A stretch of DNA of 64,000 nt, from positions 124,001 to 188,000 of IMG/VR virus record IMGVR_UViG_3300047472_000309. The stretch is one strand, 5' to 3'. Under the pieces are notes generated by a model. The model made no database searches and was not told where the DNA came from. It worked only from the letters and a program-made list of their open reading frames with translations. The position numbers were made by a program, and so were the translations under genes. Positions 13,223 through 15,531 of this stretch are shown here, one piece after another (the first letter of the stretch is position 1; the number at the start of each line of letters is the position of its first letter).

Positions 13223-13648
13223 TTACTGCAGTGTCAGTCCGGCTTGATTGGTCCGGCCCACACGACGCGGCGCCACCACTTCCTCGCCCCGGCGCGGGCG
13301 CAGCTTCACGCCTTCCAGCAGCCACGGCTGGTTATCCCGCAACCACGCCACGTCCTTGGTAATGGTGCCGGTGGAGAGCTTAAAGCACTTGGCGATGATC
13401 GTCTGCTTCATGCCCGCTTTCATCATCTTGGCAACAAACGCTCGGCGCGGCTCCACTGCCATCCAGTAGGCGAATTCCTCCACCCCATTGCGAAAGAGCT
13501 TTGCCTCGTAGCCCTTGTCAACCTGAACGACGACAAGCTTGAGAAACAGGAATTTGTGTATCGTAATCTGCACGTACTTTCGGCTGTTCTCGTACTTATC
13601 GTAGATTTCGTCGATGTACTGCTTCGCCCGGTCCATCTTCTTTGCCAT
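13223..13648 (-). CDS. HTH DNA-binding protein
   Basis: start MAKKMDR after ACAAGGA; C-terminal GMKQTIIAKCFKLSTGTITKDV helix-turn-helix. Confidence 0.65.
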   Translation of the reverse strand: MAKKMDRAKQYIDEIYDKYENSRKYVQITIHKFLFLKLVVVQVDKGYEAKLFRNGVEEFAYWMAVEPRRAFVAKMMKAGMKQTIIAKCFKLSTGTITKDVAWLRDNQPWLLEGVKLRPRRGEEVVAPRRVGRTNQAGLTLQ

Positions 13649-13809
13649 TTCAGTTCCTTGTAACAATTGTAGAGTAACGACTAATGCGGGGCTTTGCGCC
13701 CTCTCATCTACGGGTAGTAGCTTACCCATACGAAGTGCCCAGCGCGTAAAAATCACATTCCTTCGAAATAACGGCATAAGAGGAGAGCCGAAGCTCTCCC
13801 CCAATACCT

Positions 13810-14372
13810 GAAGCGTCGATTGCAAAGTCCTGTGGACAGGGATAAGCAAAAGCTTTGACTCTATGCGACTCGAATGCACTTCCGACTATACTTACCAGAC
13901 AGGGTGGCCATCCCAGCAAGTAAGTACACCCGGCTGCGCATTCCCAGCCCGACGTAGACGCAGCGGCCGCGGTGAAAACCGCAGGCGCCACTAGGCGAAC
14001 AAGTCCCGTAACGGCCGCACAAGGAAGACGGGCGTAACAACTCCGGGCTGGCACGTCGGGTTACCCCGGTTACCAACGAATCGCGAAGAAGCGAGACTAG
14101 ACGCAGTATCGGTACTGGAAACAAACAACTTACTGGTGTTTGCGTCACCAGTCGTACGATTCGTGGCACCCTTCGCGCGCAAACGCGATCTCGTCCACAC
14201 GTAGGTACCTCCGCTAATCGTGAGTCACGGAGTCACAGGCGAAACTCGCCTGAATCTTGCTTGCAGCAAGTCTGGAAGCACTATCGACTCGGTCTGATCC
14301 ACAAGGTCCAGTCAGCGGCAGGTCAGTGCATGCAAAGGAGAGGGCGTAGTTTCACGTCCGACAATGCTTCCA
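13810..14372. ncRNA. candidate large structured ncRNA
   Basis: ~560 nt with no credible ORF and many nested inverted repeats, between the tRNA-like cluster and a terminator. Confidence 0.5.
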
Positions 14373-14394
14373 AATTTGATGGCAGAAGAAAACT

Positions 14395-14520
14395 TGGTTC
14401 CGTCAGGTTGGTATCGAACCAACGACCTCCGTCTGGTTGGTGAGTGGGAGAGTCCACCCTACCTGGTCGGTAGGTGGGCCCACTCTGATGACGGCGCTCT
14501 ACCAACTGAGCTACTGCGGA
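14395..14520 (-). ncRNA. tRNA-like RNA 1 (anticodon loop replaced by a long hairpin)
   Basis: TCCGCAG-TA-GCTCAGTTGGTAGAGC-G-CCGTC-[insert]-GACGG-AGGTC-GTTGGTTCGATACCAAC-CTGACGGA-A-CCA. Confidence 0.8.
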
Positions 14521-14544
14521 CACTGAGGTACAACGGTAAAAGGA

Positions 14545-14677
14545 TGGTTCCAAGCGACACGAATCGAACGTGTGACCTCCCGTCTGTGTATACCAACTCC
14601 ACCACTTCCCAATACTGGGAAGCCCGGATTCGAACCGGGGGAACTACGGGCACTCTTCCAAACTGAGCTACGCTGGA
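14545..14677 (-). ncRNA. tRNA-like RNA 2 (anticodon loop replaced by a circularly permuted tRNA module)
   Basis: TCCAGCG-TA-GCTCAGTTTGGAAGAGT-G-CCCGT-[T arm, closed acceptor hairpin, D arm]-ACGGG-AGGTC-ACACGTTCGATTCGTGT-CGCTTGGA-A-CCA. Confidence 0.8.
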
Positions 14678-14702
14678 CACTGATACAACTACAACGAATT
14701 CT

Positions 14703-14787
14703 TGGTAGAGAGGGTGCGATTTGAACGCACGAAGGCAGAGCCACCGGATTTACAGTCCGGCCCTTTTAACCACTCAGGCACCTCTCT
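14703..14787 (-). tRNA. tRNA-Tyr(GTA)
   Basis: AGAGAGG acceptor, D loop with GG, CCGGA-CTGTAAA-TCCGG anticodon arm, long variable arm, GTTCAAATC T loop, ACCA end. Confidence 0.95.
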
Positions 14788-14799
14788 ATTGCTGCATAT

Positions 14800-15531
14800 C
14801 TATACCACGTTCTGATAAGACTTGCCGTTGATGATGTCAGAGATCAACGAATGATGAGCGCCGTACTGACGACCAATCTCCCGCATTCCCATCGTCCCCT
14901 TCAACTGGCGAATCTCTCGAACCTGTTCTTCTGTGAACCGAGAACTACCCACTTCTGTCCCCTGCAGAATAGGAACCAAGTTATTAGCATAGGCGTGCTG
15001 GGTATTCTCTTTGTACGTCGCCCATTCAAGATTCGTGTCGCGATTGTCGATCTTCACCGCGTTCAGGTGATTAACGATTGGCTTGTTATCTGGGTTAGGG
15101 ACAAAAGCTTTTGCGACTTCACGACTCGTCTTGATTGCGCGATTCACTCCATTGCGACCACCGATCTTGGTGATGTGATGGAGATAGTTGCCATCTACTA
15201 AATTTTGCGACACAACGCGATTTGTCCGCTTCGAATACAAATCTCCGTTTCGAGTGACCAGGAAATAATCTTCCAGGCCCTCAATCGGTTTCGCGTCGTT
15301 ATGAGGACTTGGGTCATCGGCGGTTCGCTTACGAATCTCGCCGTCCTCAATAATTAGGTTGAGAGGGAAAGGCTCCCCATCTTCCATTTCCTGCTCAAAC
15401 TGGTCCAGCGGGCGAAGCTCGTGCGTGTTACCCGATTCTTTCAAATGGGTGATCAACATGAATTCTTTGCCGTTCTTGTCTTTTGTTTGTCGCAGAACCC
15501 ATTCGTCCAAATTAGGCATTACCAAAGGCAT
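14800..15531 (-). CDS. HNH homing endonuclease (NUMOD4-HNH-HTH type)
   Basis: IEGLEDYFLVTRNGDLYS (NUMOD4-like), VAKAFVPNPDNKPIVNHLNAVKIDNRDTNLEWATYKENTQHAY (HNH), C-terminal HTH. Confidence 0.9.
   Translation of the reverse strand: MPLVMPNLDEWVLRQTKDKNGKEFMLITHLKESGNTHELRPLDQFEQEMEDGEPFPLNLIIEDGEIRKRTADDPSPHNDAKPIEGLEDYFLVTRNGDLYSKRTNRVVSQNLVDGNYLHHITKIGGRNGVNRAIKTSREVAKAFVPNPDNKPIVNHLNAVKIDNRDTNLEWATYKENTQHAYANNLVPILQGTEVGSSRFTEEQVREIRQLKGTMGMREIGRQYGAHHSLISDIINGKSYQNVV

Follow-up and report, generated by a model that had tools for sequence, protein, structure and literature searches.

Tandem anticodon-less tRNA-like RNAs with irregular acceptor stems in a jumbo phage belong to a clade-specific family of tRNA-derived structured non-coding RNAs

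The stretch of DNA described here, in the following called the window, comprises 64,000 nt and represents bases 124001-188000 of the IMG/VR virus record IMGVR_UViG_3300047472_000309. This record is complete, has a length of 310,654 bp and carries direct terminal repeats, which identifies the source virus as a jumbo phage. Within the window a small RNA gene cluster is present, all features of which lie on the minus strand. Its first gene is a tRNA-Tyr (GTA, 14703-14787), called by ARAGORN and scoring 60.6 bits with the Rfam tRNA model. It is followed by a 25-nt spacer, RNA2 (14545-14677, 133 nt), a 24-nt spacer and RNA1 (14395-14520, 126 nt). Both RNAs display a tRNA scaffold in which the anticodon loop is replaced, in RNA1 by a long bulged hairpin and in RNA2 by a permuted tRNA-like module. 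Rather than decoding tRNAs, they are members of a clade-specific family of phage tRNA-derived structured non-coding RNAs. Neither is called by ARAGORN and both stay below the gathering score of Rfam RF00005, so that the window yields only the tRNA-Tyr. At permissive Rfam thresholds nothing further appears in the window except matches to YrlA, which are artefacts in which a T arm is paired with the D arm of the following gene.

Both RNAs share the leader TCAGTG, located at 14678-14683 directly 5' of RNA2 and at 14521-14526 before RNA1, and both start with UCC and end with GGA-A-CCA. The 7-nt 5' acceptor strand is followed by UA, a 4-bp D arm, a 5-bp stem at the anticodon position, the variable loop AGGUC, a 5-bp T arm, an 8-nt 3' acceptor strand, an A and the CCA end. 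The D stem reads GCUC/GAGC in RNA1 and GCUC/GAGU in RNA2, the D loop contains G18 G19, and the T loop is UUCGAUA in RNA1 and UUCGAUU in RNA2. The determinants of the tRNA L-shape are present, namely U8, A14, G18 G19, the UUCGA T loop, G53-C61, the 4-bp D stem, the 5-bp T and anticodon stems and A73-CCA. The leader, the ends, the D and T arms and the AGGTC loops had all been listed in the original prediction, and every one of them is found at the coordinates given above on the minus strand.

The acceptor stems, UCCGCAG/CUG[A]CGGA in RNA1 and UCCAGCG/CGC[U]UGGA in RNA2, consist of seven Watson-Crick pairs, with a single 3'-strand nucleotide left unpaired between the fourth and the fifth of them. 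Here, the 3' strand of RNA1 (14399-14406) contains an unpaired A at 14403. In RNA2, 8 nt (14549-14556) face a 5' strand of 7 nt (14677-14671) and the unpaired U is either 14553 or 14552. Thus, the extra nucleotide is present in both RNAs and the pairing is kept despite the differing stem sequences, as had been proposed. The minimum-free-energy fold of RNA1 (RNAfold) is exactly this bulged cloverleaf (-49.9 kcal/mol, z = -2.6), and deleting the bulged A in silico makes the RNA about 3.8 kcal/mol more stable, which argues that the bulge is a retained cost. For RNA2, the nested double cloverleaf reaches -41.6 kcal/mol compared to a minimum of -42.3 kcal/mol.

In place of an anticodon loop, the 5-bp stem is followed by inserts of 56 nt in RNA1 and 62 nt in RNA2, and the equivalent of position 33 is U, C or G among the orthologues. 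One explanation would be that these are intron-containing tRNA genes giving rise to working tRNAs, or decaying pseudogenes disrupted by an insertion. Small inserts do exist in phage tRNA genes, and RNA1 of the Burkholderia phage FLC9 passes the threshold of the Rfam tRNA model with 42 bits when its insert is skipped. However, removal of the inserts restores neither a conserved U33, an anticodon, a purine-37 nor a consistent 7-nt loop. With introns allowed, ARAGORN reads the RNA1 type as Leu(CAG) in the window, as no tRNA in the closest orthologues and as stop(UUA), Val or Met in more distant ones, and RNA2 as Ser or Val. Such inconsistent putative anticodons argue against intron-bearing tRNAs. 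Furthermore, no group I intron or other intron family is detected by Rfam at RNA1 or RNA2, and the complete phage genome encodes neither RtcB nor an Rnl2-type ligase. Neutral decay, in turn, is excluded by the covariation of scaffold and cargo described below. Both versions are thus disfavoured and appear highly improbable.

An insert of the small kind was observed in L029, a 349,660-bp IMG/VR contig. Here, a tRNA-Asn-like gene (432-514, UCC...GGA-G-CCA) carries a 31-nt hairpin exactly between U33 and G34 of its CU-GUU-AA loop, which may represent a small intron or, alternatively, a masked tRNA in a jumbo phage.

Membership in the tmRNA family, already denied in the original prediction, was rejected as well. 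Every aligned sequence has a C3-G70 pair instead of G3-U70, the D stem comprises 4 bp, a tag reading frame is missing and the tmRNA search by ARAGORN was negative over the whole genome. The tRNA-like domain of tmRNA is still similar in having an acceptor stem, a T arm and a CCA end, with a long module-bearing helix replacing the anticodon arm. In contrast to tmRNA, RNA1 and RNA2 possess a complete D stem and lack pseudoknots.

The inserts of RNA1 and RNA2 are unrelated to each other, as had been noticed from the letters alone, and can be regarded as two different cargos. The insert of RNA1 (14434-14489) consists of an internal loop formed by AUCA and ACCAACCA, a GAGUGGG/CCCACUC helix and a distal hairpin. 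It represents a hinged hairpin with a CCA-rich single strand directly adjoining the 3' strand of the 5-bp stem. The proximal helix has changed to AGGUGGU/ACCACCU in the soil variant L104, where it is kept via multiple double changes. The 3' side of the hinge reads, depending on the lineage, ACCAACCA, GCCAACCA, GCCACCA, CCAUACCA, CCACUA or CCACU. The common motif CCA-N(0-2)-C-[CU], usually followed by A, is present in the RNA1- and RNA3-type sequences that were read, with the exception of L089, which has an ACCAAC motif in the hairpin loop instead. A pairing of the ACCAAC loop of RNA1 with D loops (GUUGGU) was considered; it is perfect in the window, yet neither FLC9 nor L104 conserves it, and it was dropped. 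A minimal member of 80 nt (L091, 1740-1819) contains just an 8-nt loop, UUGCCACU, together with a UU acceptor bulge, and a third type found in L091 and L104 displays a GGCCAUUAAC loop on a covarying helix.

The insert of RNA2 (14584-14645) is a circularly permuted tRNA nested inside the tRNA scaffold. It starts with the variable-like linker AGUUCC, followed by an inner T arm (14639-14623, CCCGG-UUCGAAU-CCGGG), a 7-bp acceptor-like hairpin capped by GUAU (14622-14605), UG and an inner D arm with a GG loop (14602-14586). The inner hairpin comprises 7 bp in all seven sequences compared (four lineages) and covaries at three positions (U-A/G-C, C-G/G-C and A-U/C-G/G-C). In the RNA2 of L050 and L052, CCCA-GUAU-UGGG is replaced by CCCC-GUUA-GGGG, a compensatory change. 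The inner T stem covaries at two positions among the seven orthologues, and the inner D stem is formed by GUG/CAC or GCG/CGC plus a purine-A pair. A fifth lineage of this type is represented by L091, with a distinct 7-bp inner helix (UAUCGCC/GGCGAUA). In three lineages the loop closing the inner helix begins with (G)CCA and a linker of 4-10 nt (L089 620-630, L091 2145-2155 and FLC9, L087 2325-2340). This arrangement resembles an encoded tRNA 3' end followed by a 5' leader, and an opening of the inner helix by RNase P would be a possibility; RNA2 of the window has the tight GUAU tetraloop and no such (G)CCA start. It is plausible that RNA2 goes back to two tRNAs in tandem. Loss of the two anticodon loops, together with one strand of either anticodon stem, would have left a domain-swapped pair, with the 5' half of the first copy base-pairing to the 3' half of the second.

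The permuted module recalls the bacterial Y RNAs of the YrlA family (RF02553; PMC4201824). Like YrlA, the RNA2 insert contains a variable region, a T arm, a closed acceptor-like stem-loop and a D arm in this order, starting from the helix. The inner helix has 7 bp as in YrlA of Mycobacterium smegmatis, and an RNA of FLC9, named X3, also has an extra V hairpin. A local alignment places the inner module of X3 on positions 29-81 of the Rfam YrlA model (21 bits, E 0.011 in a 97-nt search). Furthermore, the (G)CCA loop start in three lineages recalls the YrlA of M. smegmatis, which is cleaved by RNase P and receives CCA (PMC4201824). This would fit to an adaptor function, in which the permuted module of the RNA2/X3 type tethers the host Ro60/Rsr ring, PNPase or another enzyme of RNA repair or decay. 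On the contrary, the module of RNA2 is carried by the anticodon stem of another complete tRNA body instead of a Ro60-binding stem, and RNA1, which has no permuted module, would not be covered. With 21-22.5 bits, the scores are far below the gathering score of 69, and membership in the YrlA family was therefore rejected. No Ro-binding stem is present; the Ro-binding motif GNCGAA was not seen on reading the sequences, although no motif search was run. A TROVE/Ro gene (PF05731) is absent from the complete 310,654-bp genome, whereas control genomes were detected, and the phage thus has no rsr gene. Even within YrlA the module itself has no assigned role. An adaptor of this kind is regarded as improbable.

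To identify relatives, the IMG/VR database was scanned with a gapped pattern consisting of the D arm, 45-75 nt, AGGTC and the T loop. This revealed both genes in three further records (L007, L050 and L052), two of them jumbo phages, as well as one homologue each in Ralstonia phage FLC1-1B and a 279,845-bp record. A covariance model, R1, was built from nine of the pattern-scan sequences and gives 134 bits for RNA2 and 121.7 bits for RNA1 of the window. A search of phage genomes with such a model had been suggested at the outset, and R1 indeed detected members that were not part of it: three in FLC9 (E = 4e-19 to 7e-14), seven in the soil metagenome contigs L091 and L104 (E = 1e-22 to 2e-16), one in Ralstonia phage FLC4-3B and two in the IMG/VR fragment L089. 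In total, 24 anticodon-less tRNA-like RNAs were parsed in 11 phage records, i.e., the two of the window and 22 in 10 further records. The carriers are IMG/VR jumbo phages, the Burkholderia phage FLC9, the Ralstonia phages FLC1-1B and FLC4-3B, the 279,845-bp record and the two soil contigs. A protein encoded next to the cluster is only 29% identical to its FLC9 homologue (tblastn), yet FLC9 contains three such RNAs. Other searches were less productive. The exact pattern with an 8-nt 3' strand ending in GGAACCA returned the three closest IMG/VR genomes and otherwise coding-sequence noise, a protein-based search found only close IMG/VR relatives, L089 and FLC9, and a pattern of leader and D arm yielded nothing but ordinary tRNAs in 185,579 cellular genomes. 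In the clade of the window the UCC...GGA ends resemble tRNA-Asn, and neighbouring tRNA-Asn genes score 54-62 bits with R1; a tRNA-Asn ancestry of the scaffold is suggestive for this clade only and was not adopted in general.

A regular acceptor stem is present in none of the 24 RNAs. In 20 members, the 3' acceptor strand is longer by one or two nucleotides (A, U, G, C, UU, AA or CA), situated between base pairs 4 and 5, between base pairs 5 and 6 or at the junction to the T stem. The other four, of the FLC1-1B type, contain a 2x2 internal loop at base pairs 4-5 (CCCGCGG/CCAAGGG); in FLC4-3B the stem reads CCCGCGA/UCAAGGG, pair 7 being A-U instead of G-C. The original prediction placed the bulge at the same position in both RNAs. 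This holds within the clade of the window, where it lies between base pairs 4 and 5, while in more distant relatives the position shifts or the internal loop takes its place. As a comparison, 45 of 45 unrelated insert-bearing tRNA-like genes from other IMG/VR contigs, all with 7/7 acceptor pairs, have no extra nucleotide, and the canonical tRNAs of the family-bearing clusters are called normally by ARAGORN.

The scaffold helices clearly covary. In an alignment of 19 scaffold sequences 98.1% of the cells are paired compared to 74.0% after shuffling, a value not reached in any of 500 shuffles, and the covariation score of 0.679 compares with 0.205 (again 0/500). Changes on both sides were found for 14 of the 21 pairs, and sliding the partners by 1-3 columns reduces the pairing to 31-45%. 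These figures are generous, since the alignment was fitted to the structure and many of its rows are close relatives; an independent parsing by hand agrees with them. Taken together, the assumption of a selected family is borne out: the scaffold covaries, the acceptor stem is irregular in all 24 members although its sequence varies, and the cargos are conserved within each type. Homologues keep the irregularity and show compensatory changes, and none of them assembles a consistent 7-nt loop.

In the GenBank record of FLC9 (LC667451) the whole cluster is unannotated (L087 1600-3200, about 128100-129700 of the record). It contains eight canonical tRNAs according to ARAGORN (Tyr, Asn, Ser, Glu, Asp, Gln, His and Phe) and the three tRNA-like RNAs found by the model; a further class-II-like element of about 150 nt is located at L087 2755-2905. 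For FLC1-1B and FLC4-3B, the genome paper gives only 'five tRNA genes' (PMC11530567).

Other non-decoding forms were observed as well. A 78-nt tRNA-like RNA with a 6-bp stem, a 5-nt loop UCGAA and the acceptor stem CCCGCGG/CCAAGGG, as in the FLC1-1B RNA, is present in L084 (4721-4798) and L089 (1297-1374), and L007 (9118-9198) contains a Glu/His-like form with a 7-bp stem and a 5-nt loop. Furthermore, dozens of unrelated tRNA-like genes of phages and giant viruses in IMG/VR (L003-L075) carry 45-75 extra nt between the D arm and the variable loop and have perfect 7-bp acceptor stems. A subset of these are tRNA-Tyr genes of giant viruses with introns of the eukaryotic style. In some, the insert closes on its 3' side with a normal anticodon stem-loop (L004, L006, L017, L021, L034, L035 and L040), and others have no anticodon loop whatever (L009, L030, L033, L043, L062 and L064). 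Cargo-bearing tRNA genes thus appear to be widespread in phages.

Regarding the genomic context, the tRNA-Tyr is the sole canonical tRNA in the whole 310,654-bp genome (ARAGORN and Rfam), whereas the equivalent cluster of the relatives contains 4-8. There, additional canonical tRNAs (Asn, Asp, Gln, Glu, His, Phe, Ser and Pro) are mixed with further odd tRNA-like genes. Soil relatives have 106 extra nt between tRNA-Tyr and RNA2, at the site of a tRNA-Asn in relatives, and 217 more after RNA1. The phage of the window has lost every canonical tRNA but Tyr, yet it retained RNA2 and RNA1. Directly upstream of the cluster, an ORF of 243 aa (14800-15531, minus strand) gives a weak match to HNH_3 endonucleases (E 2e-4, below the Pfam cutoff) and resembles the homing endonucleases of other phage tRNA clusters, e.g., T4 segB.

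A conserved box (14791-14804, minus strand) is located a few nucleotides upstream of tRNA-Tyr. It reads TATAGATATGCAGC in the window and TATGTATATGCATC in relatives and is present in L050, L052, FLC9 and L089. The form TAT(A/G)nATATGCA is found in the window and most relatives, and L007 retains just TATATATGCA. This box may be a phage promoter for the RNA cluster; no sigma-70-like promoter was detected in 13500-15000 of the window. The spacers between the genes (14521-14544 and 14678-14702 in the window) contain GUAGUAG or UUGUAC motifs and end with (C)AGUG or CGAUG before the tRNA-like genes, the leaders of the relatives being CAGUG, CAAUG or CGAUG. The trailers are U-rich. Box and spacer motifs may serve a phage RNA polymerase or host RNases as promoter and processing signals. 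The sequence is present in DNA sequencing runs of soil and rhizosphere. In addition, one contig of a metatranscriptome runs from the 3' end of a tRNA-Asn through the spacer into RNA2, of which it covers the first 54 nt. This fragment was found in one RNA library only, which is too little to define RNA ends, and it is a weak sign of co-transcription, as carry-over of DNA is possible.

About 130 nt downstream of RNA1 a conserved structured non-coding region of about 500 nt starts (13765-14262, minus strand). RNAalifold on five homologues (including L007 9326-9814, L052 12233-12715, L087 3183-3675 and L089 1653-2240) revealed 152 pairs, 37 of them with double changes, and a long-range closing helix. 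The region ends in a GC-rich hairpin, GGAGAGC-UUCG-GCUCUCC, and GGAAGUGCAUUCGAGUCGCA is among its invariant blocks. It has no match to an Rfam family, and a scan with a conserved block returned the known relatives only. It probably shares a transcription unit with the tRNA-like RNAs and is a candidate for a new large phage non-coding RNA. GOLLD and ROOL RNAs are likewise positioned next to tRNA clusters.

This arrangement could also be explained by a function in cis, in which RNA1 and RNA2 are processing or stabilizing modules that punctuate a polycistronic RNA island for RNase P and RNase E and, e.g., release or protect the large downstream RNA, similar to the tRNA-like elements of MALAT1/mascRNA or of mitochondrial transcripts. 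Both genes are indeed situated between tRNA-Tyr and the conserved structured RNA on the same strand, the spacer motifs are conserved and the contig from the RNA library spans a gene junction. However, ordinary tRNAs suffice for such a punctuation and occupy these positions in the relatives, and the distance of about 130 nt between RNA1 and the large RNA does not fit well. Neither the type-specific cargos nor the loss of the anticodon nor the conserved bulge would be explained. We therefore give little credence to a function in cis.

The explanation that we favour, with moderate confidence, is that these RNAs are non-decoding tRNA mimics, which are matured by the tRNA processing of the host and act in trans. 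Here, they would be co-transcribed with tRNA-Tyr as a polycistronic RNA from a phage promoter. Host RNase P would release the 5' end, since the elements it recognizes, the 12-bp stack of acceptor and T stem, the elbow and the RCCA end, are retained, and RNase E together with exonucleases would trim the 3' side to the encoded CCA. A maturation by the host is suggested by the encoded CCA, the position in a tRNA cluster and the absence of RNA-processing genes from the phage: besides the ligases mentioned above, the complete genome contains no CCA-adding enzyme and no TGT, so that any maturation must use host enzymes. The tRNA fold would confer stability on the products. They would be excluded from translation because they have no anticodon and because A73 replaces the G73 expected for a tRNA-Asn-like body. 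Furthermore, an acceptor helix kinked in the 3' strand would presumably fit poorly to aminoacyl-tRNA synthetases and EF-Tu. During infection, the RNAs would then bind, titrate or recruit a factor that binds tRNA, with RNA2 offering two tRNA elbows per molecule. Among possible partners, host enzymes or defence toxins reading the tRNA body or the CCA end, or else machines of RNA decay and repair as served by Y RNAs, are the likeliest classes. An antisense or primer role was rejected, since complements of 11-14 nt occur elsewhere in the phage genome at chance numbers and no complement of 18 nt resembling a primer-binding site was found.

Several points weigh against this explanation. The stable RNAs of 126 and 133 nt are predicted products, and the single contig from an RNA library is maybe carried-over DNA and displays a junction as expected for a precursor, not mature ends. 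Among candidate partners, Ro, RtcB, the CCA-adding enzyme, the Rnl2 ligase and TGT were all found to be absent from the phage genome. How the bulge would affect RNase P, synthetases and EF-Tu is a prediction on general grounds, and charging by a synthetase indifferent to the anticodon is possible. Furthermore, the family represents about seven independent lineages with many close relatives, so that cell counts overstate the number of independent events.

If such charging took place, the RNAs could serve as aminoacylated carriers for a non-ribosomal reaction, the bulge barring EF-Tu, in analogy to the tRNA-Gly species used for the cell wall of staphylococci. The A73-CCA end is conserved in most members, and EF-Tu is known to bind the acceptor and T helix. 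On the contrary, a G3-U70 pair, a long variable arm and a G-1:C73 pair are all missing, a candidate synthetase or transferase was not seen, though none was searched for, and a bulge in the acceptor stem more probably hinders charging as well. Charged carriers are hence hardly to be expected.

More specifically, the trans-acting mimics could be decoys or sponges, the targets being host defence toxins directed at the acceptor end or the body of tRNAs. Toxins that pyrophosphorylate or extend the CCA end, or the tRNases of contact-dependent inhibition cleaving in the acceptor stem or T loop, could be absorbed by an abundant, uncharged look-alike. Here, it fits that the A73-CCA end and the complete elbow are retained while the anticodon loop is discarded, that CCA-rich single strands recur in the cargos and that the phage of the window keeps RNA1 and RNA2 but almost no tRNAs. 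Phage tRNAs are known tools of counter-defence, such as the tRNA-Lys of T5 against PARIS and tRNA-Tyr against retron effectors (PMC11464382, PMC11555353, PMC10264068). These are also members of tRNA clusters, and the sole tRNA of the window is likewise a tRNA-Tyr. In contrast to RNA1 and RNA2, which cannot decode, they are functional decoding tRNAs with altered anticodon loops. Furthermore, no defence system or toxin has been linked to the family-bearing phages, the genes of 3/7 fully parsed RNAs of the RNA2/X3 type end with AACA and one of the RNA1 type with AUCA, and neither the elaborate cargos nor the need for a bulge would be explained. In this narrow form, a decoy is rather unlikely. Anticodon nucleases such as PrrC, RloC and AriB, against which a protection test had been suggested in the original prediction, recognize the anticodon loop. 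Since the loop recognized by these enzymes is missing, they seem to be the least apt targets, and if the RNAs are decoys, enzymes reading the tRNA body, the elbow or the CCA end are likelier.

A broader proposal can be put forward only tentatively, and we regard it as possible rather than likely. The family could represent a natural system of tRNA scaffold plus cargo, in which host maturation provides stable, translation-inert mimics. The kink would act as a mark excluding them from synthetases, EF-Tu and the ribosome, or as an address for a dedicated partner; the original prediction had likewise considered that the bulge may block aminoacylation or mark a protein site. The cargos, among them the second complete tRNA elbow, would capture or disarm host factors that read the tRNA shape or the CCA end. 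The structured RNA of about 500 nt may belong to the same RNA-based machinery. If this is true, RNA2 would be the first bivalent, 'Siamese' tRNA mimic. The same design principle, a cargo in place of the anticodon loop, is used in the engineered tRNA scaffold for the expression of recombinant RNAs, where the cell processes and stabilizes the product. In contrast to this tool, the phage RNAs are natural, evolutionarily conserved and have an irregularity in the acceptor stem.

Within phages, the closest parallel by position are RNAC and RNAD of T4 (the stable RNAs species 1 and 2), which also form a tandem pair at the distal end of a phage tRNA cluster and the function of which is still not known after 50 years (PMC3014915, PMC9697503). 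RNAC possesses a T arm and terminal sequences that pair in the manner of an acceptor stem. The T4 RNAs differ from RNA1 and RNA2 in lacking a D arm, a full cloverleaf, a nested tRNA and a defined acceptor bulge, and homology was not detected, as R1 scores rnaC with 9.2 bits (E 0.16) and has no hit in rnaD.

A description of these RNAs was not found by full-text literature searches, and tRNA finders as well as GenBank annotation miss such genes. They can be grouped with tRNA-derived mimic RNAs, for which YrlA, T4 RNAC and RNAD, tmRNA and the engineered tRNA scaffold are the closest precedents. To these, the family adds a conserved bulge of the acceptor stem as its signature, conserved cargos replacing the anticodon loop and a permuted tRNA nested in a tRNA. 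Mimicry of tRNA is a recurring strategy, as seen for tmRNA, Y RNAs and viral tRNA-like structures, and the use of phage tRNAs in counter-defence has come to light recently. Since members are present in three cultured phages, FLC9 on Burkholderia glumae as well as FLC1-1B and FLC4-3B on Ralstonia pseudosolanacearum, the role of non-decoding RNAs in phage tRNA clusters, a question since T4 RNAC and RNAD, becomes directly testable.

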